NCBI RefSeq assembly: GCF_964194025.1
Contig: NC_134477.1
Span: 53,940,001-54,004,000 of the forward strand
DNA length: 64,000 bases
Direction of reading: 5' to 3'
Origin: Convolutriloba macropyga
Lineage: Eukaryota
The number at the start of each line of letters is the position of its first letter. Position 1 is the first letter of the stretch. The translations under genes and the position numbers were made by a program. Under the pieces are notes generated by a model that saw only the letters and a program-made list of their open reading frames with translations, searched no databases and had not been told where the DNA came from. This document shows, piece after piece, positions 1 through 45,400 of this stretch.

Positions 1-3000
1 TTCGAAGTCGAAGACAACTGAAGGAAAAAACGGAACAGCTGTTTCGAAGCCAGGCAGTAAACCTTCAGGTACTCAAGGCTCAAATGTATCGGCATCTGTT
101 GTTCACTCCCGGGGTACTTATGGTCAGAGCGGAGTTACGGAAAACGATGATCTTGGAGAGGAGGGCAGTAGTGCCGCGAAAAGCAAGTCAGCACTTTCGA
201 AATCAATGGGAACAGCGGGAAAAAGTAGAACCGATACTGGGGGCTCCAGGACTAAACCTTCCGGTAAAAGTGGCCCCGAGCTTAGTGTAGAAGACAATCA
301 GACTTCGACTTCATATGGAACACCGACTGAAAAAGTTGCAAACGGTTCTAAACGGACGGAGGGCCTGGATGAAGACGCAGAAGTTGATGAAGACCTGAGT
401 GGGGATGGTTTCACTGATGGGAAAAGCGGAGCTGGTTTTTCGAAGTCGAAGACAACTGAAGGAAAAAACGGAACAGCTGTTTCGAAGCCAGGCAGTAAAC
501 CTTCAGGTACTCAAGGCTCAAATGTATCGGCATCTGTTGTTCACTCCCGGGGTACTTATGGTCAGAGCGGAGTTACGGAAAACGATGATCTTGGACAGGA
601 GGGCAGTAGTGCCGCGAAAAGCAAGTCAGCACTTTCGAAATCATTGGGAACAGCGGGAAAAAGTAAAACAGATACTGCGGGCTCCAGGAGTAAACCTTCT
701 GGTAAAGGTGGCCCCGAGCTTAGTGTAGAAGACAATCAGACCTCGACTTCATATGGAACACTGACTGAAACAGTTACAAAAGGTTCTAAACGGACGGAGG
801 GCCTGGATGAAGACGCAGAAGTTGATGAAGACCTGAGTGGGGATGGTTTCACTGATGGGAAAAGCGGAGCTGGCTTTTCGAAGTCGAAGACAAGTGAAGG
901 AAAAAACGGAACAGCTGTTTCGAAGCCAGGCAGTAAACCTTCAGGTACTCAAGGCTCAAATGTATCGGCATCTGTTGTTCACTCCCGGGGTACTTATGGT
1001 CAGAGCGGAGTTACGGAAAACAATGATATCGGAGAGGAGGGCAGTAGTGCCGAGAAAAGTAAGTCAGCACTTTCGAAATCATTGGGAACGGCGGGAAAAA
1101 GTAGAACAGATACTGGGGGCTCCAGGAGTAAACCTTCCGGTAAAATTGGCCCCGAGCTTAGTGTTGAAGACAATCAGACTTCGACTTCATATGGAACACT
1201 GACTGAAACAGTTACAAAAGGTTCTAAACGGACGGAGGGCCTGGATGAAGACGCAGAAGTTGATGAAGACCTGAGTGGGGATGGTTTCACTGATGGGAAA
1301 AAGGGAGCTGGCTTTTCGAAGTCGAAGACAACCGAAGGAAAAAACGGAACAGCTGCTTCGATGCCAGGCAGTAAACCTTCAGGTACTCAAGATTCAAATG
1401 TATCGGCATCTATTGTTCACTCCCGGGGTACTTATGGTCAGAGCGGAGTTACGGAAAACAATGATATCGGAGAGGAGGGCAGTAGTGCCGCGAAAAGCAA
1501 GTCAGCACTTTCGAAATCATTGGGAACAGCGGGAAAAAGTAGAACAGATACTGGGGGCTCCAGGAGTAAACCTTCCGGTAAAATTGGCCCCGAGCTTAGT
1601 GTTGAAGACAATCGGACTTCGACTTCATATGGAACACTGACTGAAACAGTTACAAAAGGTTCTAAACGGACGGAGGGCCTGGATGAAGACGCAGAAGTTG
1701 ATGAAGACCTGAGTGGGGATGGTTTCACTGATGGGAAAAGTGGAGCTGGCTTTTCGAAGTCGAAGACAACCGAAGGAAAAAACGGAACAGCTGCTTCGAT
1801 GCCAGGCAGTAAACCTTCAGGTACTCAAGGGTCAAACGTATCGGCATCTGTTGTTCACTCCCGGGGTACTTATGGTCAGAGCGGAGTTACGGAAAACGAT
1901 GATCTCGGAGAGGAGGGCATTAGTACCGCGAAAAGCAAGTCAGCATTTTCGAAATCAATGGGAACAGCGCGAAAAAGTAGATCAGATACTGGGGGCTCCC
2001 GGAGTAAACCTTCCGGTAAAAGTGGCTCCAAGCTTAGTGCAGAAGACAATCAGACTTCGCCTTCATATGGAACACTGACTGAAACAGTTACAAAAGGTTC
2101 AAAACGGACGGAGGGCCTGGATGAAGACGCAGAAGTTGATGAAGACCTGAGTGGGGATGGTTTCACTGATGGGAAAAGTGGAGCTGGCTTTTCGAAGTCG
2201 AAGAGAACTGAAGAAAAAAACGGAACAGCTGTTTCGATGCCAGGCAGTAAACCTTCAGGTACTCAAGGGTCAAACGTATCGGCATCTGTTGTTCACTCCC
2301 GGGGAACCTATGGTCAGAGCGGAGTTACGGAAAACGATCTCGGAGAGGAGGGCATTAGTGCTGCGAAAAGCAAGTCAGCACTTTCGAAATCAATGGTAAC
2401 AGCGGGAAAAAGTAGAACAGATACTGGGGGCTCCCGGAGTAAACCTTCCGGTAAAAGTGGCTCCAAGCTTAGTGCAGAAGACAATCAGACTTCGCCTTCA
2501 TATGGAACACTGACTGAAACAGTTACAAAAGGTTCTAAACGGACGGAGGGCCTGGATGAGGACGCAGAAGTTGATAAAGACCTGAGTGGGGATGGTTTCA
2601 CTGATGGGAAAAGTGGAGCTGGCTTTTCGAAGTCGAAGAGAACTGAAGAAAAAAACGGAACAGCTGTTTCGATGCCAGGCAGTAAAGCTTCAGGTACTCA
2701 AGGGTCAAACGTATCGGCATCTGTTGTTCATTCACGGGGAACCTATGGTCAGAGCGGAGTTACGGAAAACGATGAGCTCGGAGACGAGGGCATTAGTGCC
2801 GCGAAAAGCAAGTCAGCACTTTCGAAATCAATGGGAACAGCGGGAAAAAGTAGAACAGATACTGGGGGCTCCCGGAGTAAACCTTCCGGTAAAAGTGGCT
2901 CCAAGCTTAGTGCAGAAGACAATCAGACTTCGCCTTCATATGGAACACTGACTGAAACAGTTACAAAAGGTTCTAAGCGGACGGAGGGCCTGGATGAAGA

Positions 3001-5895
3001 CGCTGAAGTTGATGAAGACCTGAGTGGGGATGGTTTCACTGATGGGAAAAGTGGAGCTGGCTTTTCGAAGTCAAAGAGAACTGAAGAAAAAAACGGAACA
3101 GCTGTTTCGATGCCAGGCAGTAAAGCTTCAGGTACTCAAGGGTCAAAAGTATCGGCATCTGTTGTTCACTCCCGGGGTACTTATGGTCAGAGCGGAGTTA
3201 CGGAAAACGATGATCTCGGAGACGAGGGCATTAGTGCCGCGAAAAGCAAGTCAGCACTTTCGAAATCAATGGGAACAGCGGGAAAAAGTAGAACAGATAC
3301 TGGGGGCTCCCGGAGTAAACCTTCCGGTAAAAGTGGCTCCAAGCTTAGTGCAGAAGACAATCAGACTTCGCCTTCATATGGAACACTGACTGAAACAGTT
3401 ACAAAAGGTTCTAAGCGGACGGAGGGCCTGGATGAAGACGCTGAAGTTGATGAAGACCTGAGTGGGGATGGTTTCACTGATGGGAAAAGTGGAGCTGGCT
3501 TTTCGAAGTCAAAGAGAACTGAAGAAAAAAACGGAACAGCTGTTTCGATGCCAGGCAGTAAAGCTTCAGGTACTCAAGGGTCAAAAGTATCGGCATCTGT
3601 TGTTCACTCCCGGGGTACTTATGGTCAGAGCGGAGTTACGGAAAACGATGATCTCGGAGACGAGGGCATTAGTGCCGCGAAAAGCAAGTCAGCACTTTCG
3701 AAATCAATGGGAACAGCGGGAAAAAGTAGAACAGATACTGGGGGCTCCCGGAGTAAACCTTCCGGTAAAAGTGGCTCCAAGCTTAGTGCAGAAGACAATC
3801 AGACTTCGCCTTCATATGGAACACTGACTGAAACAGTTACAAAAGGTTCTAAGCGGACGGAGGGCCTGGATGAAGACGCTGAAGTTGATGAAGACCTGAG
3901 TGGGGATGGTTTCACTGATGGGAAAAGTGGAGCTGGCTTTTCGAAGTCAGAGAGAACTGAAGAAAAAAACGGAACAGCTGTTTCGATGCCAGGCAGTAAA
4001 GCTTCAGGTACTCAAGGGTCAAAAGTATCGGCATCTGTTGTTCACTCCCGGGGTACTTATGGTCAGAGCGGAGTTACGGAAAACGATGATCTCGGAGAGG
4101 AGGGCATTAGTGCAGCGAAAAGCAGGTCAGCACTTTCGAAATCAATGGGAACAGCGGGAAAAAATAGAACAGATACTGGGGGCTCCCGGAGTAAACCTTC
4201 CGGTAAAAGTGGCTCCAAGCTTAGTGCAGAAGACAATCAGACTTCGACTTCATATGGAACACTGACTGAAACAGTTACAAAAGGTTCTAAACGGATGGAG
4301 GGCCTGGATGAAGACGCAGAAGTTGATGAAGACCTGAGTGGGGATGGTTTCACTGATGGGAAAAGTGGAGCTGGCTTTTCGAAGTCAAAGAGAACTGAAG
4401 AAAAAAACGGAACAGCTGTTTCGATGCCAGGCAGTAAACCTTCAGGTACTCAAGGGTCAAACGTATCGGCATCTGTTGTTCATTCACGGGGAACCTATGG
4501 TCAGAGCGGAGTTACGGAAAACGATGAGCTCGGAGACGAGGGCATTAGTGCCGCGAAAAGCAAGTCAGCACTTTCGAAATCAATGGGAACAGCGGGAAAA
4601 AGTAGAACAGATACTGGGGGCTCCCGGAGTAAACCTTCCGGTAAAAGTGGCTCCAAGCTTAGTGCAGAAGACAATCAGACTTCACCTTCATATGGAACAC
4701 TGACTGAAACAGTTACCAAAGGTTCTAAGCGGACGGAGGGCCTGGATGAAGACGCAGAAGTTGATGAAGACCTGAGTGGGGATGGTTTCACTGATGGGAA
4801 AAGTGGAGCTGGCTTTTCGAAGTCAAAGAGAACTGAAGAAAAAAACGGAACAGCTGTTTCGATGCCAGGCAGTAAAGCTTCAGGTACTCAAGGGTCAAAC
4901 GTATCGGCATCTGTTGTTCATTCACGGGGAACCTATGGTCAGAGCGGAGTTACGGGAAACGATGATCTCGGAGACGAGGGCATTAGTGCCGCAAAAAGCA
5001 AGGCAGCACTTTCGAAATCAATGGGAACAGCGGGAAAAAGTAGAACAGATACTGGGGGCTCCCGGAGTAAACCTTCCGGTAAAAGTGGCTCCAAGCTTAG
5101 TGCAGAAGACAATCAGACTTCGCCTTCTTATGGAACACTGACTGAAACAGTTACAAAAGGTTCTAAGCGGACGGAGGGCCTGGATGAAGACGCAGAAGTT
5201 GATGAAGACCTGAGTGGGGATGGTTTCACTGATGGGAAAAGTGGAGCTGGCTTTTCGAAGTCGAAGAGAACTGAAGAAAAAAACGGAACAGCTGTTTCGA
5301 TGCCAGGCAGTAAACCTTCAGGTACTCAAGGGTCAAACGTATCGGCATCTGTTGTTCACTCCCGGGGTACTTATGGTCAGAGCGGAGTTACTGAAAACGA
5401 TGATCTCGGAGAGGAGGGCATTAGTGCCGCGAAAAGCAAGTCAGCACTTTCGAAATCAATGGGAACAGCGGGAAAAAGTAGAACAGATACTGGGGGCTCC
5501 CGGAGTAAACCTTCCGGTAAAATTGGCTCCAAGCTTAGTGCAGAAGACAATCAGACTTCGCCTTCATATGGAACACTGACTGAAACAGTTACAAAAGGTT
5601 CTAAACGGATGGAGGGCCTGGATGAAGATGCAGATGTTGATGAAGACGTGGTTGGGGATGGTTTCACTGATGGAAAAAGTGAAGCTGGCTTTACGAAATC
5701 GAAGGGCACTGAAGAGAAAAGTGGAGCAGCTGTGTCTATGCCAGGCAGCACATATTCGGATACTCAAGGTTCAAATGTCTCGGTATCTGTTGTTCACTCT
5801 CGGGGAATGTATGAGCAGAACGGCGTTACTTATGCCGATAATGATGATGATGTTGATGGAGCGGAAGAGATCAGTGGAGCGAAAAGCAAAACCGG
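1..5895 (+). repeat. Coding tandem repeat, 438-bp/146-aa unit, 13 full units plus a degenerate partial unit in the window (array starts upstream)
   Basis: The unit start ttcgaagtc recurs at 1, 439, 877, 1315, 1753, 2191, 2626 (one 435-bp unit with a 3-nt in-frame deletion), 3064, 3502, 3940, 4378, 4816 and 5254, with a degenerate copy from about 5692. There are no frameshifts or stops in the coding frame. Confidence 0.97.
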
Positions 5896-7323
5896 TACTC
5901 TAGGTGTTGGAGTTGGTTCGCGAGTTTCTTCTAGAAAGTCGCACAAAACATCTCACGCGTCAGAAGTAAAGTCTCACGGCAGTTTTGAGACAACCAACTC
6001 GACTGATAACTCAGATTTAATACAACCAACAAAAAGTCAACTTTCTGACTCCAAAAGTAGGAGCTTGACAGCCGGCAAACCATTGCATTCAAAATCTGAA
6101 GTCAGTGGAAGCGGAAAGGTAGGTGGAACTGAAACTGGTACTCAAGAGAATGATGAAAAGAGTGATTCAGTAGAAAGGGAATCGCAGAAAGATGGATCAA
6201 TTACGTTTGGATCATTATCACAGAAGGTGGGTTCTCATCAAGCTGGACAGAGCGATGTCTCTCAGGAAGAGGGCTCCCAGAACACTGATGCAGATGGAAA
6301 CAGAACGGGGGTAGATTCGCAATCGGGAGAACGGGAGAAAAGTTTTGGTTCTCAAGGCGAAAAGAGTAAATCACAAGCCACAGAATCCGCAATTTCCGCT
6401 CGCACATCTCTCAAAGATGAGGAAACAGGTAAAGAATTTGAAGTGCAATTGGGGTCAAAGGGAACGCTCGGTGTGAAATCTCTAACGTCAGAGGACCAGC
6501 AAGATCCAGAAGCTGAAGGTTCCAAAGTTATGTCATTGAAACCAAGTGACGATGGCAGATCTAAAAGCAGTAGGTCGAGCAAGCGAAGCAGGGGTAGAAG
6601 CAGCCGACGATCAAAGAGAAGTGGTACAAAAGGTGGAAGTAGAGATGTTTCTCAAGGTGAAGATGATGGTGAAAAGAGCCAAGGTCAAAGTGCAGATGAC
6701 GAACAAAAAGCCTCGACAAAGGAGGATGATCATTTTGGAGACAACGAAAACAAAACGGGTGTTGAAATAAACAATGAAGAGGGAAGCGAAACTGATGGTG
6801 ATGGTCCGAACAGTATGATCAACCGATTTACAGACGGAAGAGCTTTAAAATCTAAAACAGGTAGTAAAAAAGAAACTGGAGCTTCAAGTCTGAAGCAATC
6901 TAGCGCTGAGCTAAGCGACTCAGAAGTTTCCTCGTTTGGTCGTAAAAAAGGTCCTGGAAGTAAGTCGACTAAAGGTTCCAAGAAAAGTGAACTTGCACGT
7001 AAATCAGGTCTGGAAACTCCGGACGACGAGGAGCCGGTCGGAGATCCTGGCAATTTGTCAAGTGAGATTGATTTACCTCCTAAAGATGATAGCAAGTGGC
7101 CTAAAACTGAGCCTACTTTGCCTCCGACTGAGTTTGGTAAACGGTATGAAAATTTAGCTAACAAAGACGAAAGGCCTGGAGGAGGCAAGCAACAGTTCAA
7201 CTTCGATGACCAGATGAAGTCCACAAAGAGTTGCATGCACTCTCTGGAACAGTTGAGGTCACAGCATGAACAGATGTTGAATGGATTGCAACAGTCCAAA
7301 CAACTGCAACAAGACGAAGCTGA
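2..7323 (+). CDS. KLC: Kinesin light chain gene, giant coding exon (5'-partial): tandem 146-aa repeats, non-repetitive low-complexity linker and start of the KLC heptad region
   Basis: The frame of ORF 206..7327 is open back to base 2 (TCG AAG TCG AAG ACA...), so the ATG at 206 is an internal repeat Met. The C-terminal end QFNFDDQMKSTKSCMHSLEQLRSQHEQMLNGLQQSKQLQQDEAE resembles the KLC N-terminus (human KLC1 DEIISKTKQVIQGLEALKNEHNSILQSL...). A perfect donor GA|gtaagt at 7323/7324 (phase 2) joins in frame to the exon at 16085. Confidence 0.85.
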
Positions 7324-16084: not shown

Positions 16085-16154
16085 GTCCAACGCCAAGTAC
16101 AAGGCCATTGAGCTCTCCAAGCAGAGAATAGAGAGCGGACTAGCCGATGCACAA
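16085..16154 (+). CDS. KLC: KLC exon (heptad region): (E)SNAKYKAIELSKQRIESGLADAQ
   Basis: Acceptor gtgtttag|G and donor CAA|gtgagt, phases 2 and 0. The translation matches KLC ESNLVEEKSNMIRKSLEMLELGLSEAQ. Confidence 0.92.
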
Positions 16155-23859: not shown

Positions 23860-25453
23860 GAGTGTTTGCTGGCTGACAATTATATTAAGCTTATTAGCTT
23901 TCAGCTTAGAAGCTGAATTAAGTATAGTTTAGGAATCTAACTGAAACTACGCGCCAAACTTTTTGACACTAAAAAAGTCTTTTATTTTTTCCTTTTTCTG
24001 TTTTAATCCCTATGTGCATCCAGCTCGTCAAAATCCAGCTCTTTTCCAACCATAAAAATAAATCACATGACAATTAATCTAAAAGTTACTTTCATTTTTT
24101 GTATATTAAACGCAGTATAACTTTTTGACGGTGATTTTCTTTTTTCAAACACTACCAAGCTTCTTTCCACCAATTTAATGAGAACCACAACACTTGCTGA
24201 GTTTGAACGCAAATGTTTTGATGGATTCAACCTTTCAATTTTTCACTGCTTTGTTTTATAGAAATAAAAGAAATGAGATTTACGTTTGTTTTTTAAATCA
24301 GAAGCAGCATTTGTATGGTTTTTCTCTTTAATAAAAGCTTTTGGATTTTTTTTTAATATTTCCCCCAGCTTAGTAGGTGCATATCATTTGCACCACCCAG
24401 ACGCACATGACACTTTTTTAGCTAATGATTTACTATGTAATGGGCACGTGTTTGGGAACCGCGGTAGTATAACGTACTGAGGGGAGGCAGATGGAAAGGA
24501 TCCGTTTTCTTTCTATTTTGTATAATAACTTTGACAATGAATTTGCGTCTTCTATGTTCCATCAAAACTTTTTGGCCGTAGTTCATCAAGTACTAGTATT
24601 GAAAACTTGAATTAGGGAAAATACTACTTTGTAAATGACACTGACTTTGTAAAATTTCATTAGAGTGTTTGCTGGCTGACAATGATATTAAGCTTATTAG
24701 CTTTCAGCTTAGAAGCTGAATTAAGTATAGTTTAGGAATCTAACTGAAACTACGCGCCAAACTTTTTGACACTAAAAAAGTCTTTTTATTTTTTCCTTTT
24801 TCTGTTTTAATCCCTCTATGTGCATCCAGCTCGTCAAAATCCAGCTCTTTTCAAATCATAAAAATACGTGACATGACAATTAATCTAAACGTTACTTTCA
24901 TTTTTTGTATATTAAACGCAGTATAACTTTATGACAGTGATTTTCTTTTTTCAAACACTACCAAGCTTCTTTCCAGCAATTTAATGAGAACCACAACACT
25001 TGTTGATTTTGAACGCAAATGTTTTGATGCATTCAACCTTTCAATTTTTCACTGCTTTGTTTTATAGAATAGAAATAAAAGAAATGAGATTTACGTTTGT
25101 TTATTTAAATCAGAAGCAGCATTTGTATGGTTTTTCTCTTTAATAAAAGCTTTTGGATTGTTTTAATTGTTCCCCCAGCTTAGTAGGTGCATATCATGTG
25201 CACCACCCAGACGCACTTGACACTTTTTTTGCTAATGATTTACTATGTAATGGGCACGTGTTTGGGAACCGCGGGAGCATAACGTACTGAGGGGAGGCAG
25301 ATGGAAAGGATCCGTTATTTCTATTTTGTATAACAACTTTGACAGTGAGTTTGCGTCTTCTATGTTCCATCAAAACTTTTTGGCCGTAGTTCATCAAGTA
25401 CTAGTATTGAAAACTTGAATTAAGGAAAATACTATTTTGTAAAAGACACTGAC
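23860..25453. repeat. Tandem duplication, ~803-bp unit, two copies
   Basis: gagtgtttgctggctgacaat at 23860 and 24663. Both copies end gacactgac (about 24645 and 25453). Confidence 0.92.
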
Positions 25454-26441
25454 AACCTTTAGGTTTGAGTAGCATAAATTCTTAGTTCTTTACTTTGATA
25501 ATTTAAGTTCCCAGTACTTTTGTACATAATTGCTCGGATAAGTTTGACAAGACAACAAATAACCTTATTCGTAATTAGATTTGTTAAAAGGCTAAAACTT
25601 TCGGAGCTTTCGAAAATTGTCCGTATTCTTAGTTTACCTGTTTTCCCATTCGTTTACCAATTCGTTACATTTTTTTAAATTGAGTTTCATTGAATGTGAC
25701 TGGTTGATTGAAAAGATTTCGAAAATGCTTATACTCTTCTCTTTTTCTCCACTTGTCTTTTACGACTGATTAAGTGCTATGGTAAGAAATTTGAAGGATT
25801 TTTTTGGTCGCAGACGTCTTGTATGAAATTTTGCCTAACTTTTTCTCGCTTTTCGAGTGATTTTTTATCTCATCGAATTTTGTTTTTACATGATCTAAAA
25901 TGCCTTACCATTCACAAAGTTCAGCAGTTCAGATCAAATAGTGGCAATTTACTACTAGAAGTCAATTGAAAAGTATGTCATAATTGGTTCATATTCTCGT
26001 CTGATGAAGTCTCGAAGACTTCTGCAACTAAAAAATTCCTTCAAATTTCTTACCACAGCACTTAATCAGTCGTAATAGAGAAAAACAATGGAGAAAAAGA
26101 CGATAGTACAGGCATTTTTGAAATCTTAAAATGGCCTTAATAAGCTCTAATAACATAACATAACATCATTTGAAGTTGCTTTGTAAACATATTGCCCGGC
26201 TAACCCCACCCACCCTCACTTACATGGAAACAGGCTACAATAGAATCGATTCCCCATGACCCCCCACCGCACACTACCGGTCCTCATTGTCGATTAGCCA
26301 ACTCCCACAAAATACTGTCCTCGTTGTAGTATATTTGCAATAATGGGGGGGGGGGGGGAGCTATTCGTTATATACCCAATCAGCTTGAAGGAAGGAATGG
26401 CAGAGAAGCCAATTACAACCTGCTTATTTTTGTTGATTTAG

Positions 26442-26687
26442 TTCATGATCCAAGCCAATGCCTACATCAAACAGTTAGAATCAGAGAGACGTCTCTTACA
26501 AGCCCAAGTGAAGAGACTTATCCAAGAGAACTCCTGGCTCAGGGAAGAGTTGAACGCAGCCCACCAGAAATCACAAGAGAATGACCAGGCAATCGCAGCT
26601 TTAGAAGTTGAGAAAAAACACCTCGAGTTTTTGAACTCACTCAAAAAATTTGAAACTCAAGATGCGACGGATGAATCGATTAAAAAT
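26442..26687 (+). CDS. KLC: KLC exon (heavy-chain-binding heptad repeats): FMIQANAYIKQLESERRLLQAQVKRLIQENSWLREEL...EVEKKHLEFLNSLKKFETQDATDESIKN
   Basis: Acceptor tgatttag|TTC and donor AAT|gtaagt, 246 nt, phases 0 and 0. Strong similarity to KLC [26 protein letters not shown]...EEEKKHLEFMNQLKKY. Confidence 0.96.
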
Positions 26688-27072
26688 GTAAGTTTATCCC
26701 GCCCCAACATTCTTTCGAACCCTAAATTTGCTTTGAACGATCTTAAGACCATACTTGGTCTTGAGTGTGTTGAATTAGCTTTCCTTGTTTTCGCATAACG
26801 AATTTTTTCTGAGTTCTCTACCATCGTATCTTGATACAGTACAAATTATGTTCGGTAAATTTTTCAATTTTCTCTTAACTATCGGAAGCCTTAACTTATT
26901 GCTTTTGGGTTTTTCCCATTATTCGCCCCCTTTATGGTATGTTGAGGGGGTCTATACGTTATATGACCACTGAGGGGGTATATCAGTTGGAATATATCAG
27001 TTTCTTTTCGGTTACTTCTCTGGTTTCCAGCTGAAAAACTAAACTTCTAAATTGCGTTCGCTAAATATAAAG

Positions 27073-28002
27073 GGCGACAAAGCACCAACTGTTAAAAACA
27101 CCCAGCTCCTCAAGCCAGCTTCGAACCCTCCATTTGAGCCTGAAGATGACATGGAGGTCATGAAATCAACAAGAGGCATTCGAGGACCGCTCAGCATGGA
27201 ATCTGAAAGTCTGGCTAAAGGTTCTTCGAAGCTGGGTTCTAAGGCCACTTCAGAGAAAAATGAGTCCGGATCTGGAACAACGAAGGGACTTTCCGGCACC
27301 GGTGGAAGTGGTGCAAAGTCAGCAACTGGATCTCTGGGCGCGCAAATAGAAGAAGGGTCTGAGGATTTCGAAAGTGGTTCAGGCGAGGTTTCGGGACCCG
27401 TTGGGCAGAAATCTCAATTATCTGCTGAAAGCAACAAGAATGGTTCCAGTTCTGGTATGAACTCAGATGATGGATCTAAAAGTTTTGGAGGTAGTTCCAC
27501 AAAAGAACAATCTGGGTTTGGTGGCTCCTTAAATGAGAACTCAGAAAATGGTGGACCAAGCCACAACGAAACTGGTCTCACGGGAGGCTCAACTGCGAAA
27601 GGGCAGTCTGGGTTTGAAAATTCTACGAAATCGAAATCCGGATTTGATTCCAAGACAGGTCAGTCCACAAAAGATCAATCAGGGATCAACATCGAGGAAA
27701 CTTCGAAAGGTCCGTCAAATTTCAATGGTGCATCAACTGCAGGTAACACAGGGTTAAGTAAAAGTAAAGGCGGTTCAGCAAAAACGGGGATTTCTGGTTT
27801 GGATGACGTTGGCGAGGGTTCTGAAAACGAAGGCGAACCAGGAACTGAAAATGAAGACCAGTCCCAGGAGAACCCTGAAGATAATGAAGATTATGCCGAG
27901 GAAAGTTATGAAGGCCAGGGTCTATCGGAGGGCGAAGCGACCAAAACAGACTCGACCGGTTCCTCAACGTCTAAAGAAAAAGATTCAACTAGTTTCTCTT
28001 AG
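27073..28002 (+). CDS. Putative alternative terminal exon of the KLC gene (about 310 aa, Ser/Gly/Glu/Lys-rich), or a disabled exon
   Basis: A 316-codon open frame with higher GC than the surrounding intron and a composition like the giant exon. It is in phase 0 with the preceding donor via aag|GGC at 27072/27073. A stronger acceptor ttccag| at 27030 is also in frame but is followed by TAA at 27040. No consensus phase-0 donor was seen, and AATAAA lies at 28115-28120. Confidence 0.55.
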   Translation, partial: GDKAPTVKNTQLLKPASNPPFEPEDDMEVMKSTRGIRGPLSMESESLAKGSSKLGSKATSEKNESGSGTTKGLSGTGGSGAKSATGSLGAQIEEGSEDFESGSGEVSGPVGQKSQLSAESNKNGSSSGMNSDDGSKSFGGSSTKEQSGFGGSLNENSENGGPSHNETGLTGGSTAKGQSGFENSTKSKSGFDSKTGQSTKDQSGINIEETSKGPSNFNGASTAGNTGLSKSKGGSAKTGISGLDDVGEGSENEGEPGTENEDQSQENPEDNEDYAEESYEGQGLSEGEATKTDSTGSSTSKEKDSTSFS

Positions 28003-29880
28003 TCGCATTTTTAGTCTAATAATAGTTTCCTCTATTGTGTATGAAAAGAAACTAAGTCTACCAAAGATTGAAATAACGAGAAAATATTTTGTTTAGAAAA
28101 TCTAGTTTTGCATGAATAAACTTCATAAACAAAAGTGGCTATACCTATAACAATTGAAATGTTCTGCTGCTCTGTTCTGTATATCGCGGATTATTAGATT
28201 ATTATTAGGTGAACATGAGCTTATTCCTGAAAACGCATTTTCGACTGAATTGAGTGCGTGACATCATTTTTCACTTAGTGGAGCGGGTTTTTTGTTCATT
28301 TGAAATGACTTCCTAACTCTGAAATTGACTTTTCCTTAATTCAATTTAAAGGGAAAAGGTTAAGTGAGTGTTTTCCACTCCATTTGAAGGTTATTTGAGA
28401 GCAGCTATGTTGGTATTTTTTTCTAAGGTATGTGTTTCTAACAACTTAACCCAAAAATAAACAGAATTTTAGTTAGTTTTGATATTTCTAATAGCGTGAT
28501 CTGTTACTTAGGTGCTCTACTTTTTTATTTGCCTTACCTTTCGATCGCGTTTTTCGTCAACATAAGTCACCACGTCCACGTTTGACTCCGAACTTAAGTA
28601 CAATTTTGGGATCTAACTGAAACTTCACATAACTGATAACTCTTTTTACACTTAGAGGCAAATTCTGTCAGTTTTTGTCTGAAATTCTTTTCCTTACTTG
28701 TCACTCTAATTGAGGGTTATTTGAGAGCAGCTAATAGTGGCAGCAATACGTTATAAAGAATCCTACTCAAAATATAATATCTCAGCATATAAAAGGAAAA
28801 TTTTTTTGGCCTCAGCATATAAAAAGAATTTTTAAGGATCTTAAGAAACTTCACACCATTTAGAACACATTTTACACGTGAGACCAAATTCTGCCAATTT
28901 TTGTCTCTTTTCTTTCTTGTTTTAGTCTGGATTTTTGTCAATTATGTAACCTTATGTCAATTATGTCAATTATGTGGCTATTTGCCGGCTTTGTTCAAAT
29001 TTGAAGTTGTATTTGAGTTTTTTAGTTTAAAAGGCTGATGTAGTACTTATGTAGTTCTTTCAGCTACGCTATTGGGCAGAGTTTAGCAAGAACGATAGTT
29101 GTTTTATTGACAATAACGCAACAAACTTGAGCAATTTAATTTAATTTTGATTTTTAGTTTATCTACTCTGCCTGTTAAATGACAAGCAAAGTTTGCTATT
29201 CTGCAGTTGGTTTTCTATTGTTTGCCACGAGATAGGTTTTGTGCGTCCTAAGAAGTTTGGCCTGAGCGTCCTAAGAAGGTTTTCTGTTCTATAAATATTT
29301 CAATATGAAATGTTAGTTTTCAATTCTTCAACAAGAAAATCTACAATTCAGGTTTTGACTTTTTCCATTTTTGTAAAAAGAAATTGTTTCTGCTTAGGTT
29401 GGCTCCTAAGCAGCAAACGCAGCTTTAGTAATTTACTGTTGTTTCTGTTCGTCTAAAAAGTCGACAAAGTTGAACAAAATTGAGTCAAAAGAGTTTTCTA
29501 GTATTCTTTTCTCATTAATTAAATTTTTTAAAGTGGTAACCTTAGAAACGTTTGGGTGAGTTAGTGTTAACTTAGAAAATATCCCTAACTTGTGCATTGA
29601 GTTGGGAGCATTGGTCTGAAATCGTATTTTCAAGATGCAGATTTTGGCAAAAGTTGATTGTTCTCTTTGGGCTGGAACATGTTTTTGTAAGAATCGTGTT
29701 CGGTATTTATCAATCAAAATTTAATTGCAAAGACTTTATAATTGTTAACTAAATTTAGATGTTTAAGCTTTCTAAAGAGACTCTAGTTATCAGTTTCTGA
29801 GTAATAAAATGTGCAAATGTGATGAGCAGATCTGCAGTACTCGGGTTTTTGCTGTCGTATTTTCATGACCCAATATATTT

Positions 29881-31031
29881 TATCATTACGTCGCCAATCC
29901 TACATTTTGAGCAAGCAAATTTGCTTGCTGAAGTCAGCGTTGTGCGCGCTCCCATGTTTTAAGATAGAAAGGGATTTATAGGTATTTGCGGCCAGCAGTA
30001 TCAATAAGGGAAACTAATTCAAATTCGCCCAAATTTGCAAGAATTCGCCAGAAATGTCCGAGATTCCGGAATTACATGGCGCGTGAGAAAAGCAAACAGA
30101 TCTTGCCACTATTATCCGCAAAATTACGTCCCTAATATCCGCTCTAAGGTAAATACTTTCCGAGGTTTAATCGTCACTGATTTCCGCAGTTTTTGATGTC
30201 TTTTTCACTATTGTCCGGATCACTATTGTCCGCAACTTTATGTCACTATTATTATTATTGCGTTTTTATCCGCAACTTTAAAGTCACTATCATGCGCGGC
30301 TTATAATTATGAATTAGCTCAATTGTTTTGATTGCTTTAAATTTTGTTTCAGAAAGAAGGCACTGTGGGATCTTTATTAAACTAATCAAATGACCAGTTT
30401 CATCTATGAAGTGAAACAGTACTGAGGGATTTTTATCAAAATAATCACCAGGATGAAACAACTTAGTGATTCCTATTAAAATAATCTGACGCTTATTTTA
30501 GTAAACTCTAGTTTTGCTTCAGTTAGTGTTTGACGCCATTAAACTGATTGCCGCTGAGTCCAACTCACTGTCAGATCATCTAAAATAAATAGCGGTGAAA
30601 TAAAGTGAAACAGTACTGAGGGATTGTTTTCGAAATATTCACCACGATGAAACAGCACTGACTGATTCCTATTATAATCTGACGCGTATTATAGTAAGGT
30701 TAAGTTTTGCTTCAGTTAGTGTTTGATGCCATTAAAATGATTGCCACTTTTTTCAATTCACTGTCAGATGATCTGAAATAAATAGCTGTGTTAATTGCAG
30801 CTTATTTTTTTACGCCTTGATCTAAATTGTGGAAAAAGCTGACAAGTCTGTCATTAATTTTGTGATTTATAAATTAAGCGCAGCGCAATTAATTTATAAT
30901 TTAGAGCGCAGCATATATTTGAAATGGAATAGTTAATTATGCTCAAATTTGTGTTCGTGTTCGTAATTATGCTCACTCGTGTTCGTAAACGCGGACTGAA
31001 CTGAATTTGTAGGATTGGCGACGTAATGATA
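29881..31031. mobile_element. Non-autonomous DNA transposon (MITE-like), about 1.15 kb
   Basis: A perfect 24-bp inverted pair: tatcattacgtcgccaatcctaca (29881-29904) and tgtaggattggcgacgtaatgata (31008-31031). The outer TA (or AT) can be read as a 2-bp TSD. There is an internal duplication of about 195 bp (30408/30603) and no transposase ORF. Confidence 0.85.
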
Positions 31032-36661: not shown

Positions 36662-36749
36662 AGTGGATCACCTGAGAATGCCAAGGGCGCCAAAGACGAA
36701 CTTGGTTTGGACATCGGAGATCTGGACGACGCCAGAGATTCATCAACAG
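36662..36749 (+). CDS. KLC: KLC linker exon: SGSPENAKGAKDELGLDIGDLDDARDSST(E)
   Basis: Acceptor ctaatttcag|AGT and donor CAG|gtaaaa, phases 0 and 1, which bridge the 26687 donor and 47195 acceptor exactly. It is a GC-richer acidic island in AT-rich intron, at the position of the KLC acidic linker. Confidence 0.8.
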
Positions 36750-38233: not shown

Positions 38234-41200
38234 GGAACGGGTGTCTTAATAAAAAAGCAGAGTCCGTCAATGTTTTGGCTCGCCTTCGATGTTACGCATT
38301 GTTCTTTTGACTGGCTCATTTCATCTCTTCTCCATTTTACGTATTCTTGTTGTCAGTGTTTGGTTTTCTGTTTTGTCAAGTTGACGTTTTGTCTGAATCA
38401 GAATTTTTTCAATATATTTTGCTGTGGAGTTTTACTAAGATTATTTGATTACTTGTTGTTTTTTAAAGCTGATCAAGATGGGTTTTTATGATGAAAAGAA
38501 GAAGTAAGCGATCTTTTCGATGCCTCGTTTTGTATGCAGAAACATCTCAGTTGTATGGATGTAAAAGATGTTTTCTGTTCTAAACGTACAGACAATTCTT
38601 GAAATAGGAAATAGCCCTGCAGGCATGTCTAGCAGTTTTTAAAATTTTCAAAATTGGGTGCTTCCGCTTTTGTCGGTAATAGCTCATAGCTCTTTTCAGT
38701 TTGGATTTTCCGGCAACATTTGCAGACATTTCAATTTTTCGTAGTTGTTCACTGCCGCTGAGATCCCTCTTTTTTTATAATTGCTTAGATTCCTTCAAAA
38801 GCATTCCATTTTTTTCTCTGCAGTAGCACCACCTGGAAATCAAACTTACCAAAGAAAAGAAAGAAAAGAAAGAATTTATTTATCAGAATCTCAGTAAATA
38901 CGTAAAATTAACACAGCACAAGTTAATGAGACTCGGAAAGGATAGGTAACGGGATCATTCGATCCGCCTTGTCCTACCCGTGGCTATTCACGAAATATTA
39001 AAAACGAAAACACAAAAAAAACTCAAAAATTAAAAATATTTTAATTTCCAAAAATCTGCAAATTAAATGTTGTCTATCTTTCCAGGTAAGCTTTTTGATA
39101 CCATAGACTCAAGAGGCATTGACTACTTATCCATTCTAAAGTATGAAGAGCGAGGGAGAAAATTTTTCTTTTTTAAATTATTAAGATTAAAATTTTTTTA
39201 AGTCTTTAGAAATTTTTAATTTTTACAAAAATAACAAAAAATGCATTATCTCGGATCCTAGAAGAGCTAGAGGGGTCAAACTTTTCACCCAGAATCAGGG
39301 CAAAAATAGATGTCCTGTAGCATGCAGCCAAGCGGGTTGAGATATTGGGTTCCTAAAAATTAAAAATATGTTTCACCAAATCCTGGTTTTGTAAAAGGTA
39401 CGTTTTTTTGATTTCATAATAAATTTTTTAAATTTCTTTTGCATTACACTTACTAATATTTTCTGGCAACAAATTGTTGGTTTGCAGAAGATTGAAGAGT
39501 TTCGAGGCCCTGTATTTTATAAAAATCCTCTCTATTTTGGTCCTAGCAATGGGTTCAGATAAAACCTGATTTGATGAAGACCTGGTGCATCTTTTGATTT
39601 CTTTCATTTTGAATAAATTGCTGGAAAATATTTGTTGAAGCAATCCAGCAACTGATCGTAATACGAATTTAAGCAATTCGTATACATGTAACTCAAATAC
39701 TTAAAATTTCATTTGAAAAGAAGATATCATTGCAATGATCCCGTCTGTTACGAAATTAGACAAATTTTAGAATCCTTTTCTGCAGCGGGAAAATAGGATT
39801 TAGCCTACTGTAGCTACAACAACCATATACAAGTATACCATATTGTATAATGGGTGCAACATTGCTACGATAATAGTTTATTAATTGAAACCGGGGCACG
39901 TAGTGCCTCAATTTCGAAATGATTCCACACTGCTTACCGAGTCTCTTTGTAACATAATCAACATGTGAATGGAACGAAAGTTTATTATCATTATGAATAC
40001 CTAAATATTTACACACAGGCTTACAATTTATCACAGTTTGATTTAAGCTGAAAGCAGAGTTGGAAGCACTAGGTTTTAAATTCATTTGTACAGTTTTTGT
40101 TAAGTTAATTGCAAGCTTATTGGCATTTAGCCAAACATTGAGGTTACAGAGATCCTCTTTTATACCTTTCACGTCATTGTTTATTGCAGTTAGGTTGGTG
40201 TCATCAGCAAATAGTAAAACTTGTAGGGAATTACAGGAAAATGGCAAGTCATTTATGTATATCAGAAACAATAGTGGTCCAAGAATAGATCCTTGTGGAA
40301 CACCGCAATTTATACTTTGCCAAGAAGAGGATATATTATTAACTTCTACCCTTTGGATCCGTTTCGAAAGGTAAGACTGTAACCATTTCAAGCATTGCCC
40401 TCTAAATCCATAGCTTTCTAGTTTATAAAGCAGGATGGAATGGTCTAGAGTATCAAAAGCTTTTCGTAGATCAAGGAAAGAGCTGATCATATTTTTATTC
40501 TTCACTCTCATATTTTCAACAAGGTCCACTAATACATCAATGGTACAATGCTTCGATCGAAAACCATATTGCTTGGGGTACAATAAAGAAAATTGCTCAA
40601 GATAGTCATACATTCTTACATACATTGCCCTCTCAAAAATTTAACTCCAAACTATAAGTAGTGATATTGGCCTGTAATTATTTTCACAAGTTTTATGTCC
40701 ATTTTTATGAAGTGGAAGAACTTTCGCTTTACGCAGCTCTTCGGGGAATTCGCCGTTTTGAAATGAGAGATTTACCAAATTAGTCAGATAGGGAATCACC
40801 GCATCAGATGAGGCTTTTATAATTAAAATGCTGATATAGTCATCCCCTGAAGAAGATTTATTGTCCAAATTATCAATAATTGATTTGATTTCACTTTCAC
40901 TTTTATCATTCAGAAACATTGACTTTTCAACTTTCAGTACCTTTGGCAGATTGGTGGGTTTAATTGTTTTGGTGACTTCTTGGGCAATTGTGGTGAAGTA
41001 TTTATTGAAACTTTCGGCAATCTCAGGAGCCGAGTTTTCTATACAAGAGTCGAGGGCAGGCACGATCGAAGAACTGAGATGCTTGCCACTTATATCGTTT
41101 AAAAGCTTATACGTCTGTCTTGAGTCTCCAATACATGAATCAAACTTCCTCCAGTAAAATTGCTGTTTTGTCTTAACTAAATTGCTTTTAAATTGATTAC

Positions 41201-44200
41201 TTAGATCCTTAAATTTCTTTAAAATCAAGGGGCCTTTATTTTGTTTCCAATTTTTGTGTGCCTTGTTTTTCCGAGATCTTAGATTTTTTAACTTGGTGTT
41301 AAACCATTTTGGTTGCGATGTTGTGGCTTTTGAACAGTTTATTTTGGGGGCTAATTCATGGGAACGGGTGTCTTAATAAAAAAGCAGAGTCCGTCAATGT
41401 TTTGGCTCGCTTTCGATGTTACGCATTGTTCTTTTGACTGGCTCATTTCATCTCTTCTCCATTTTACGTATTCTTGTTGTCAGTGTTTGGTTTTCTGTTT
41501 TGTCAAGTTGACGTTTTGTCTGAATCAGAATTTTTTCAATATATTTTGCTGTGGAGTTTTACTAAGATTATTTGATTACTTGTTGTGTTTTAAAGTGACC
41601 TGCTGATCAAGATGGGTTTTTATGATGAAAAGAAGAAGTAAGCGATCTTTTCGATGCCTCGTTTTGTATGCAGAAACATCTCAGTTGTATGGATGTAAAA
41701 GATGTTTTCTGTTCTAAACGTACAGACAATTCTTGAAATAGGAAATAGCCCTGCAGGCATGTCTAGCAGTTTTTAAAATTTTCAAAATTGGGTGCTTCCG
41801 CTTTTGTCGGTAATAGCTCATAGCTCTTTTCAGTTTGGATTTTCCGGCAACATTTGCAGACATTTCAATTTTTCGTAGTTGTTCACTGCCGCTGAGATCC
41901 CTCTTTTTTATAATTGCTTAGATTCCTTCAAAAGCATTCCATTTTTTTCTCTGCAGTAGCACCACCTGGAAATCAAACTTACCAAAGAAAAGAAAGAAAA
42001 GAAAGAATGAATTTATTTATCAGAATCTCAGTAAATACGTAAAATTAACACAGCACAAGTTAATGAGACTCGGAAAGGATAGGTAACGGGATCATTCGAT
42101 CCGCCTTGTCCTACCCGTGGCTATTCACGAAATATTAAAAACGAAAACACAAAAAAAAACTCAAAAATTAAAAATATTTTAATTTCCAAAAATCTGCAAA
42201 TTAAATGTTGTCTATCTTTCCAGGTAAGCTTTTTGATACCATAGACTCAAGAGGCATTGACTACTTATCCATTCTAAAGTATGAAGAGCGAGGGAGAAAA
42301 TTTTTCTTTTTTAAATTATTAAGATTAAAATTTTTTTAAGTCTTTAGAAATTTTTAATTTTTACAAAAATAACAAAAAATGCATTATCTCGCATTCTAGA
42401 AGAGCTAGAGGGGTCAAACTTTTCACCCAGAATCAGGGCCTAAAATTGGATGTCCTGTAGCATGCAGCCAAGCGGGTTGAGATATTGGGTTCCTAAAAAT
42501 TAAAAATATGTTTCATCAAATCCTGGTTTTGTAAAAGGTACGTTGTTTTGATTTCATAATAAATTTTTTAAATTTCTTTTGCATTACACTTACTAATATT
42601 TTCTGGCAACACATTGTTGGTTTGCAGCAGATTGAAGAGTTTCGAGGCCCTGTATTTTATAAAAACCTCTCTATTTTGGTCCTAGCAATGGGTTCAGATA
42701 AAACCTGATTTGATGAAGACCTGGTGCATCTTTTGATTTTTCATTTTGAATAAATTGCTGGGAAATATTTGTTGAAGCAATCCAGCAACTGATCGTAATA
42801 CGAATTTAAGCAATTCATATACATGTAACTCAAATACTGTTAAAATTTCATTTGAAAAGAAGATATCATTGCAATGATCCCGTCTGTTACGAAAATAGAC
42901 AAATTTTAGAATCCTTTTCTGCAGCGGGAAAATAGGATTTAGCCTACTGTAGCTACAACAACCATATACAAGTATACCATATTGTATAATGGGTGCAACA
43001 TTGCTACGATAATAGTTTATTAATTGAAACCGGGGCACGTAGTGCCTCAATTTCGAAATGATTCCACACTGCTTACCGAGTCTCTTTGTAACATAATCAA
43101 CATGTGAATGGAACGAAAGTTTATTATCATTATGAATACCTAAATATTTACACACAGGCTTACAATTTATCACAGTTTGATTTAAGCTGAAAGCAGAGTT
43201 GGAAGCACTAGGTTTTAAATTCATTTGTACAGTTTTTGTTAAGTTAATTGCAAGCTTATTGGCATTTAGCCAAACATTGAGGTTACAGAGATCCTCTTTT
43301 ATACCTTTCACGTCATTGTTTATTGCAGTTAGGTTGGTGTCATCAGCAAATAGTAAAACTTGTAGGGAATTACAGGAAAATGGCAAGTCATTTATGTATA
43401 TCAGAAACAATAGTGGTCCAAGAATAGATCCTTGTGGAACACCGCAATTTATACTTTGCCAAGAAGAGGATATATTATTAACTTCTACCCTTTGGATCCG
43501 ATTCGAAAGGTAAGACTGTAACCATTTCAAGCATTGCCCTCTAAATCCATAGCTTTCTAGTTTATAAAGCAGGATGGAATGGTCTAGAGTATCAAAAGCT
43601 TTTCGTAGATCAAGGAAAAAGCTGATCATATTTTTATTCTTCACTCTCATATTTTCAACAAGGTCCACTAATACATCGATGGTACAATGCTTCTATCGAA
43701 AACCATATTGCTTGGGGTACAATAAAGAAAATTGCTCAAGATAGTCATACATTCTTACATACATTGCCCTCTCAAAAATTTAACTCCAAACTATAAGTAG
43801 TGATATTGGCCTGTAATTATTTTCACAAGTTTTAGGTCCATTTTTATGAAGTGGAAGAACTTTCGCTTTACGCAGCTCTTCGGGGAATTCGCCGTTTTGA
43901 AATGAGAGATTTACCAAATTAGTCAGATAGGGAATCACCGCATCAGATGAGGCTTTTATAATTAAGTTGCTGATATAGTCATCCCCTGAAGAAGATTTAT
44001 TGTCCAAATTATCAATAATTGATTTGATTTCACTTTCACTTACATCATACAGAAACATTGACTTTTCAACTTTCAGTACCTTTGGCAGATTGGTGGGTTT
44101 AATTGTTTTGGTGACTTCTTGGGCAATTGTGGTGAAGTATTTATTGAAACTTTCGGCAATCTCAGGAGCCGAGTTTTCTATACAAGAGTCGAGGGCAGGC

Positions 44201-44498
44201 ACGATCGAAGAACTGAGATGCTTGCCACTTATATCGTTTAAAAGCATATACGTCTGTCTGGAGTCTCCAATACATTAATCAAACTTCCTCCAGTAAAATT
44301 GCTGTTTTGTCTTAACTAAATTGCTTTTAAATTGATTACGTAGATCCTTAAATTTCTTTAAAATCAAGGGGCCTTTATTTTGTTTCCAATTTTTGTGTGC
44401 CTTGTTTTTCCGAGATCTTAGATTTTTTAACTTGGTGTTAAACCATTTTGGTTGCGATGTTGTGGCTTTTGAACAGTTTATTTTGGGGGCTACTTCAT
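38234..44498. repeat. Direct tandem duplication of about 3.13 kb (38234-41359 / 41361-44498) covering the LINE 3' half and about 620 bp of non-LINE flank
   Basis: ggaacgggtgtcttaataaaaaagcagag starts at 38234 and at 41361. Copy 1 ends gggggctaattcat at 41359 and copy 2 reads gggggctacttcat at 44498. Confidence 0.95.
38851..41359 (-). mobile_element. 5'-truncated second copy of the same LINE (RT region and 3' UTR)
   Basis: Nearly identical to 41984-44498. RT ORFs at 40641..41228 and 39756..40625, with the same simple-repeat tail. Confidence 0.93.
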
Positions 44499-45400
44499 CA
44501 AGAACATTGGCAAATATATTGGCGAACAGATTAAAATCATCATTGACATTAGCAGTTTCATCAAAGCATTCTCCTAAGCGTTGCAGTAAACTGGATTTAA
44601 AGTCTGATACTGTTTTAGGGTTTTTCAGAACAGAAGTATCTCTAAAAGAAACAGGCCGTGGTGGTTTGGTTTCAGTTTTTATTCTCCATCTCAGAGAAAC
44701 AGGAAAATGATCAGATAAATCTTCATATTTCAGTACTTCAGTCGTATCTACATCAATATTTTGGTACACAAATTGGTCTATACATGTAGAGGCAGAATGT
44801 GTCACTCGTGTAGGCTCTTTTGGACTCAAATAGTACCCGTTTGATTCGATAGCGTTCTGATAATTTTTTGTAATTAAGTTATCTTCCAAAACATTTATAT
44901 TGAAATCGCCACAGATGGTCACTGGAGTTTGGCAGGTAGAATTTCGCTCCAGGAAACAATCAAATTTCTCTAGGAAATCTTTTTTATTGGTTCTTGGTTT
45001 ATTATAAATAACCCCCACTTTAAAGTTATAACCATCTTTTGTTTTTTCCGAAAAAATAGCCTCCTAAAAGTTGAGGTCAAAAATTTTTATCAAGCTACAG
45101 TTGCTTTTAACTTGAATCATAACACCACCACCACGACCGGAATCTCGGTTTTTTACAAAGAATTGGTTGTAGCCATTGATCAAATATCCATTAAAATTAT
45201 CGTTTTAACTTAGCCACGTTTCTGTTAAACATAAAACTTCTGGTGGAGACTCAAGACCAAGTACTAGTGCTTCCAACTTATCAAAGTGTGGCTTGATAGA
45301 TCTTACATTTAAATGAAGAATTGAAATTGTATTTAAAGAACATTTTGTAGCACCATTTTCTTTTTCAAAATTATGATCCACTTTCTTTACTTGTTTCAGT
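42560..45400 (-). pseudogene. LINE ORF2 (AP endonuclease + reverse transcriptase) with several in-frame stops and frameshifts
   Basis: APE motifs HLNVRSI, LCLTETWL, GRGGGV, ICGDFNIN, PTRVT..STCID and SDHFPV. RT motifs YRPISLL, FLDLRKAFDTLDH, GVPQGSILGPLLFLIYINDL, FADDT and YLGI. Stops at about 45205, 45065, 44275 and 43780. Confidence 0.93.

Follow-up and report, generated by a model that had tools for sequence, protein, structure and literature searches.

Can a single kinesin light chain (KLC) gene close in two ways, either with its canonical TPR domain or with an entirely different tail? This question is raised by the KLC gene on the + strand of the window, i.e. the whole stretch of 64,000 nucleotides analysed here, which corresponds to 53.94–54.00 Mb on chromosome 10 of Convolutriloba macropyga. 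The intron between its heptad exon (coding for the heavy-chain-binding coiled coil) and its linker exon harbors a long open reading frame (ORF) of 319 codons (27043–27999) that is terminated by TAG at 28000–28002; the heptad exon is the common upstream exon of both possible continuations. Judged from the sequence comparisons presented below, three further acoel loci have a disordered ORF at this site, conserved in position and architecture; this positional conservation is a new result of the present analysis. The reading favored here, to which an even chance is assigned, is that the tail ORF would represent an alternative 3'-terminal exon giving rise to a TPR-less light chain (coordinates of all features are compiled in Table 1).

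With regard to the ORF itself, a preceding sequence-only reading of the window proved largely accurate. It had placed an open frame of about 950 nt 385 nt past the phase-0 donor of the heptad exon, enterable in frame through aag/GGC at 27073 and equipped with its own stop codon and an AATAAA element 113 nt further on; the frame is indeed kept from the phase-0 donor over the 385 nt to 27073, and stop codon and AATAAA are both present. An ORF listing delimited the frame as 27052..28002 (316 aa), and among all open frames in the six frames of the window it ranks third in length. When its own letters were shuffled 2000 times, the longest open run comprised 257 codons (mean 98) and the observed 319 codons were never reached. 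The tail ORF has a GC content of 0.47, the intron around it one of 0.33. In base use by codon position it comes near the giant Ser/Gly/Thr/Lys/Glu-rich exon at the 5' side of the gene, and the amino-acid compositions of the two are correlated with r = 0.945, in agreement with the bias toward S, G, K, T and E that had been ascribed to both. A relationship between tail and giant exon at the level of residues was considered and rejected (BLASTP E = 3), composition alone being common to them.

The internal organization of the tail was likewise described correctly in part. The acidic tail ENEDQSQENPEDNEDYAEESYE is present at 27847–27912, and the acidic block has a net charge of −12 and −7 in two successive 30-residue windows. 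The four quoted repeat units exist as well (e.g. STKEQSGF at 27496–27519 and STKDQSGI at 27664–27687); they are, however, recurrences of a motif and not a DNA array, and no tandem DNA repeats of note were detected within the tail ORF. No Pfam families were found in it. The AlphaFold2 model of the tail has a mean predicted local distance difference test (pLDDT) score of 46 and contains no helix and only two isolated strand/bridge residues; the tail is predicted to be fully disordered. The two 10-residue blocks of highest pLDDT (67 and 57) comprise residues 11–30 and cover the motif NPPFEPEDD.

Protein and DNA searches located the tail ORF at one place in the 1.18-Gb genome, so the segment is not a repeat, a possibility that had been raised earlier. 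The sole other match of the heptad exon in this genome is a 48% identical paralogue on C1, and no such ORF was present within 18 kb of it. This diverged KLC-like locus (G000:C1:71231732-71231881, minus strand; L003, L005-L007) matches the heptad exon over 51 residues, diverges thereafter and is followed by a long array of an approximately 850-bp repeat. Summed DNA-contig depth in the window jumps from about 50 to 4,000–52,000 at 24600–24800, 28200–28400, 28600–28800 and 29800–30000; therefore, high-copy short repeats flank the tail ORF, the nearest about 300 nt past its stop codon.

Protein searches with the tail ORF among proteins of 170–540 residues returned no homologue, and there was no match among 1.84 billion cluster representatives; a protein search with the corresponding tail of a second acoel locus (A2, see below) returned no match either. 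However, the tail ORF is a called gene in the assembly L021, as is the A2 tail in its own, and neither was recovered by its own search. Because the queries' own database entries were not returned, probably as a consequence of low-complexity filters, these blank searches say nothing about novelty or absence. The assembly L021 was also considered as a source of polymorphism and discarded: it consists of contigs from the same individual (99.98% identical, the ORF being identical).

Four sequencing runs of one study were compared with positions 24001–30000 (depth approximately 35–60x, the fourth run approximately 3x). Since introns and exons are covered at even depth, these runs represent genomic DNA and not RNA. 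They reveal a second haplotype: in the DNA contigs of two samples, indels occur in the flanks of the ORF (at 26150, 26344, 26802 and 26910). The heptad exon has three single-nucleotide polymorphisms (SNPs). The differences listed inside the tail ORF comprise a single synonymous SNP (27294 C>G, in a Ser codon) and no indels. This lack of indels among the listed differences, compared with four in the flanks, may hint at constraint. A poly(A)+ RNA-seq run of C. macropyga (ERR13669978) is cited in the genome publication (PMC13650328).

The comparison with other acoels is the more informative part of the evidence. A search with the heptad exon led to four related loci, which belong to assemblies of three other acoels (species A, B and C; the window locus is termed W): A1 (L008) and A2 (L013, L015) of species A (ERZ25878734), one locus of species B (ERZ26859043; L009, L010, L014), and a 1.9-kb contig of species C in a metagenome assembly (L011, L012), the latter being the only result of a scan of metagenomes for further acoel KLC loci. 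The heptad exon of W is 81–85% identical to its counterparts in three other acoel loci, and homology to the 5' KLC exons of the three other acoels extends over the giant-exon end, exon 2 and heptad exon of W; for the heptad exon, Pfam returned only weak coiled-coil matches.

In species B, the heptad exon is of full length and an ORF begins 241 nt past its phase-0 donor. It comprises 3026 codons from the ATG (L010:10491-19571; second haplotype L009:10482-18603), consists almost entirely of 13-residue (39-nt) units of the GDAEAKEGGSALS type and ends with GNEGDDDVGDD. The linker exon is positioned 258 nt past the stop codon and the TPR exons 5 kb further downstream; with the ORF between heptad and linker exon and the TPR exons beyond, species B thus has the same arrangement as W with a tail ten times longer. 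In the second haplotype, two units are damaged by deletions of approximately 7 and 9 nt near L009:12640, which introduce stop codons; thereafter, the frame is open for a further 1977 codons. On the contig of species C, a giant Ser/Gly-rich exon (its end only), exon 2 and the heptad exon are followed by an open frame that runs from about 150 nt past the heptad donor off the contig, so that its end lies outside.

Species A has two KLC loci of different organization. A1 is a compact, canonical KLC gene whose intron past the heptad exon measures 215 nt; there was no ORF in this intron and no giant exon within 6 kb upstream. In A2, the giant exon extends over at least 1755 codons, and the KLC N-terminal exon, exon 2 and the initial 36 codons of the heptad exon are present as well; about 500 nt past this shortened heptad exon follows a Ser/Gly-rich ORF of 311 codons with AATAAA 278 nt past its stop codon; the end of the A2 tail is acidic and includes Tyr (SDDNYNQESDSE), in a layout like that of W. 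Neither a linker nor a TPR exon was found past the A2 tail in 17.6 kb of contig. A2 and A1 differ by 12 synonymous and 2 non-synonymous codon differences in the 30 codons of the N-terminal exon block, and by 21 synonymous and 8 non-synonymous ones in 37 codons of the heptad part. These counts indicate purifying selection on the 5' KLC exons of A2; the split between A1 and A2 is old, since the synonymous sites are nearly saturated. The two loci may represent two isoforms of one gene that were turned into two genes: the pattern fits a division in which A1 kept the TPR domain and lost giant exon and tail, and A2 kept giant exon, coiled coil and tail, with no TPR exon in the contig sequence available. 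About 600 nt past the A2 tail, a 262-codon Arg/Ser-rich frame is located on the same strand (L013:10094-10879; RSSRSKARSSSKRRYGSNRRSGSNR), for which no counterpart was seen in the window.

The introns preceding the ORFs were unalignable by MAFFT; the comparison was therefore anchored on the heptamer CTTCTAA, the only 7-mer common to the pre-ORF segments of W, B, C and A2. Its distance to the proposed exon start is 29, 22, 26 and 25 nt in the four segments. In 3000 dinucleotide-preserving shuffles, any common 7-mer occurred in 122, and one positioned 20–35 nt from the 3' end in all four segments occurred in none. By its sequence, CTTCTAA looks like an optimal branch point (cf. UACUAAC). The alternative that its surroundings are a relic of a spliced leader was rejected, the alignment being not significant (z = 1.2–1.7). 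In all four loci the first AG past CTTCTAA opens the long ORF in frame and without an intervening stop, which accords with the frame conservation in relatives that had been suggested as a check; W, B and C all have heptad donors in phase 0, and the junction ATAAAG/GG is common to W and A2. The estimated chance of an in-frame, stop-free AG in all four loci is about 0.002, or about 0.02 for the other three loci if 27073 in W is taken as a prior hypothesis. The acceptor at 27031 that had been offered as another entry into the ORF does not serve this purpose, since CTG AAA AAC TAA leads to a stop codon at 27040–42.

In W, three features of an alternative terminal exon were found: an in-frame, though weak, acceptor, an own stop codon and a poly(A) signal. 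Moreover, the first in-frame ATG of W (27151) is located downstream of NPPFEPEDD and the first ATG of all (27146) is out of frame; since the motif precedes the first in-frame ATG, its translation needs an upstream exon. The motif at the tail start recurs as MPDFSEDDG in B, as PLFPPGFDDG in C and, in a looser form, as YPDFNKP in A2. From the acceptor onwards, the tails of W and A2 are of similar length (309 versus 311 codons) and composition (r = 0.94) and have a common layout: a near-neutral Ser/Gly body with SGF-type units (SGF/GSF units recur in the A2 tail), a strongly acidic block toward the C-terminus and, last, a short Ser/Thr stretch.

Based on these data, the segment may be a rapidly evolving coding region, specific to the convolutid acoel lineage and contained in one exon, that functions as alternative 3'-terminal exon of the KLC gene. 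By the first route, the donor at 26687 would be joined to the linker exon at 36662 and subsequently to the TPR exons, which would result in the canonical cargo-binding light chain. By the second route, CTTCTAA (27044–27050) would act as branch point and the AG at 27071–72 as acceptor, and 309 disordered residues would be added that begin with the Pro-x-Phe-acidic motif, continue with the Ser/Gly/Lys body and close with the acidic, Tyr-containing end; translation would end at TAG 28000 and cleavage would occur past AATAAA 28115. Such a product would keep the whole heavy-chain-binding coiled coil and possess no TPR domain; it would derive from KLC without amounting to a complete light chain. We infer the use of the 26687–27073 junction, the production of the protein and its binding to the heavy chain without TPR-dependent cargo. 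Of the TPR-less isoform postulated by the sequence-only reading, the conserved coding exon that can be joined in frame has thus held, while its acceptor is weak and a nested gene would account for many of the same findings in a species that trans-splices; a dominant-negative or cargo-blind role, as proposed for the isoform, would be a matter of inference only.

Several observations weigh against the alternative terminal exon. The acceptor at 27072 is A-rich and weak, in contrast to the T-rich YAG of the seven other acceptors of the gene. The frame of the second B haplotype is broken about 720 codons in by two small deletions, and B has neither AATAAA nor ATTAAA in the 258 nt from the stop codon to the linker exon. 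In A2, no convincing phase-0 donor was found past the conserved heptad part, and distant TPR exons could still follow because the contig ends 20 kb past the tail. At the level of residues, the comparison of the W and A2 tails reached z = 3.2 against full shuffles and z = 2.0–2.1 against block shuffles (BLASTP E = 0.66), and that of the W N-terminus with C reached z = 2.4; residue-level homology of the tails, as far as these alignments suggest it, is marginal.

The leading alternative is an independent gene inside the KLC intron; its transcript would receive a trans-spliced leader at 27073 or 27031 and would be polyadenylated near 28140; its product would be a stand-alone disordered protein of approximately 283 residues from ATG 27151, unlinked to the light chain. 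A 32-nt spliced leader has been described for Symsagittifera roscoffensis, in which 30% of genes are trans-spliced (PMC9911081), and this leader occurs at 2612 places within 3 mismatches in the C. macropyga genome versus 0 for the control. The 100 matches listed are all exact (e.g. G000:C10:53027532-53027563; loci L017-L020); because of these exact matches in C. macropyga, the leader can be regarded as identical across the two genera and its copies as very numerous. As the leader contains no ATG, it cannot supply the start codon (PMC9911081); the ORF's own ATG lies 9 nt (B) and 12 nt (C) past the acceptor, as in leader-spliced genes, a layout with an estimated chance of about 0.02 that also counts against the terminal exon. 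Given that the species trans-splices and that this spacing fits, the nested gene is a serious rival, although on balance we consider it rather improbable. It would account for the tail exon being a complete unit with own stop codon and AATAAA, and the A2 heptad exon can read on to a stop at 8068–8070, which would leave the tail as a second cistron. Several points count against it: In W, the out-of-frame ATG at 27146 is the first past either acceptor and opens a 5-codon upstream ORF that overlaps 27151, and the conserved NPPFEPEDD would remain untranslated. Nor does a nested gene give any reason for an acceptor-to-ATG distance that is stop-free and a multiple of three throughout (9 nt in B, 12 in C, 48 in A2 and 78 in W). 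An AATAAA or ATTAAA for the upstream cistron is absent between heptad exon and acceptor in any locus, and the purifying selection on the KLC 5' exons beside the A2 tail would be left unexplained. The alternative terminal exon is preferred because the loci agree in their frame relative to the donor of the host gene, because the motif of W lies upstream of the in-frame ATG and because the two copies of species A fit a sharing-out of TPR domain and tail; it is conceivable that one acceptor serves both cis-splicing and leader splicing.

The remaining explanations are less probable still. A truncated light chain without a fused tail, to which a low probability is given, would arise from splicing to 27030, by which Leu-Lys-Asn and TAA 27040 would be added and the ORF reduced to a 3' untranslated region (UTR) or to a reinitiated frame. 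In favor of this explanation, and to the detriment of the terminal exon, the consensus-like acceptor at 27030 (ttctctggtttccag), 42 nt upstream, resembles the real acceptors of the gene as that at 27072 does not, and C and A2 also have a T-rich AG 0–7 nt before CTTCTAA that likewise leads to an early stop in phase 0. In B, however, the roughly 70 nt preceding CTTCTAA are free of AG; 309 open codons with coding-like base use, and with length, composition and charge kept between W and A2, are unexpected of a UTR, and the in-frame first AG of all four loci would be unexplained. Similarly doubtful is a functionless, decaying relic of low-complexity coding sequence that has stayed open by chance, for example a fragment once belonging to the giant exon, or a defunct gene: The broken B haplotype and the protein searches without homologue (which also missed the queries' own entries) are compatible with it, as is the ease with which long open frames arise in tandem repeats such as those of B, and the tail shows no significant similarity to the giant exon. 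Yet the ORF of W contains no DNA repeat and is nevertheless open over 319 codons (0 of 2000 shuffles), an ORF occupies the same spot in four loci despite nearly saturated synonymous sites, CTTCTAA and AG are conserved, and no indel occurs in the ORF among the differences listed compared with four in its flanks. Least probable is a giant cassette exon between heptad and linker exon, by which a complete light chain would gain a disordered linker of very great length. It derives from B, where a possible phase-0 donor, GAT/gtaggt, precedes the stop by five codons and lies 270 nt before the phase-0 linker exon; its position weight matrix score of about 1.8, calculated by hand, is comparable to the real donors of these genes, and this donor is a further point against a terminal exon. 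The W ORF, by contrast, has no phase-0 GT with a donor score above 3 (its good GTs at 27659 and 27743 are in phase 1), and the ORFs of W and A2 have their own stop codon and AATAAA.

Table 1. Features of the KLC gene in the window around the candidate alternative terminal exon (positions refer to the window; a slash marks an exon boundary).
Feature	Position	Strand	Remark
Giant Ser/Gly/Thr/Lys/Glu-rich exon, 3' part	206..7323	+	closes with the KLC N-terminal helix (MKSTKSCMHSLEQLRSQHEQMLNGLQ)
Giant exon donor		+	TGA/gtaagt, phase 2
KLC exon 2 (SNAKYKAIELSKQRIESGLADAQ)	16085..16154	+	1 base completes the split codon
Exon 2 donor		+	CAA/gtgagt, phase 0
KLC heptad exon (heavy-chain-binding coiled coil)	26442..26687	+	82 codons, phase 0 at both ends
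Competing consensus-like acceptor (ttctctggtttccag/C)	27029..27030	+	
CTTCTAA, branch-point-like (ACTTCTAA from 27043)	27044..27050	+	
Proposed acceptor AG (ataaag/GG)	27071..27072	+	first AG past CTTCTAA
Candidate alternative terminal exon, coding part	27073..28002	+	309 codons + TAG
NPPFEPEDD, Pro-x-Phe-acidic motif	27124..27150	+	
Four [ST]xKxxSG[FI] units	27496..27687	+	STKEQSGF, TAKGQSGF, STKSKSGF, STKDQSGI
Strongly acidic block with Tyr (EDNEDYAEESYE)	27811..27936	+	
AATAAA, then GU-rich stretch (tgttctgctgctctgttctgtat)	28115..28120	+	113 nt past the stop
Canonical linker exon (SGSPENAKGAKDELGLDIGDLDDARDSST)	36662..36749	+	other possible partner of the 26687 donor
TPR exons	from 47195	+	downstream of the linker exon

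The heptad exon is bounded by the acceptor AG at 26440–41 and the donor AAT/gtaagt. The long KLC intron between the linker exon and the TPR exons accommodates two tandem, partly broken copies of a long interspersed nuclear element (LINE) with endonuclease and reverse transcriptase ORFs (39756–46265, minus strand).

Light chains are thought to confer cargo choice and autoinhibition on kinesin-1 by means of their TPR domain. If the favored reading is true, a KLC coiled coil that carries a disordered tail in place of the TPR domain would either be a regulator built into the system or put kinesin-1 to a new structural use, and it would provide a natural test of the role of the light chain without its TPR domain. 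A more far-reaching proposal, which is advanced tentatively and with less confidence than the terminal exon as such, is a KLC locus of convolutid acoels with two outputs, in which one coiled coil would be completed by the TPR domain or by a fast-evolving disordered tail of 300–3000 residues with motifs resembling ligands of the TPR groove (Pro-x-Phe-acidic, Tyr-acidic). With the giant disordered N-terminal exon added, the latter output would be a "bristle" light chain that would occupy kinesin-1 without TPR cargo and may engage the canonical TPR domain in trans; in one lineage, the two outputs would have been split into two genes. The four loci exemplify a low-complexity exon whose residues are almost all replaced over time although its position, length class, charge layout and splice signal persist. 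Should the frame belong to a leader-spliced intronic gene instead, it would be a useful case for acoel annotation, as gene predictors will miss it.

Compared with the leader-spliced genes of acoels and flatworms (PMC9911081), the locus has in common the abundance of the same leader and the AG 9–12 nt before the ATG in B and C. It differs in that such a gene would sit in a host intron on the same strand, in the poor start context of W and in the conserved frame relation to the donor of the host gene.

KLCs bind the heavy chain through their heptad region; their TPR domain recognizes cargo motifs and contributes to autoinhibition (PMC6214655). Among the ligands of the TPR groove are LFP-acidic and Y-acidic motifs (PMC6214655), which the tails partly resemble in two respects: They start with PLFPPGFDD (C), PPFEPEDD (W) or PDFSEDD (B), and at the end of those of W and A2 a Tyr is enclosed by acidic residues. 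In KLCs, the canonical LFP-acidic motif likewise has its place between heptad region and TPR domain; unlike in this motif, the literal LFP triplet occurs in C only and the following Asn/Ser in none of the tails. From their sequences, the tail motifs may be taken as a lead toward TPR-groove ligands. The acoel linker exon (36662–36749) reads KDELGLDIGDLDDARD at the position of the LFP-acidic motif of other animals; the Phe-Pro signature is absent from this exon, and a Phe-acidic motif instead opens the alternative tail.

The splice isoforms of known KLCs are the nearest parallel within the family. Mammalian KLC1 and sea urchin KLC form C-terminal splice variants in which the heptad region is common to all. 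Here as there, several products would be derived from one gene via alternative 3' exons; the known isoforms, however, differ past the TPR domain and keep it, whereas the exon considered here precedes both linker and TPR exons, and its use would take away the entire cargo-binding domain. Literature searches for a natural TPR-less KLC isoform found none, and we know of no description of a natural KLC isoform lacking this domain. As mechanisms, alternative terminal exons and intronic polyadenylation are ordinary, and 3' alternative splicing is well known for KLC genes. With intronic polyadenylation and composite terminal exons, the locus has in common an intronic terminal exon with stop codon and AATAAA that would compete with a downstream acceptor; it differs from them in that a position-conserved ORF of 309–3026 codons (in the complete loci) takes the place of a few read-through codons, and in that a conserved, branch-point-like element precedes the exon.

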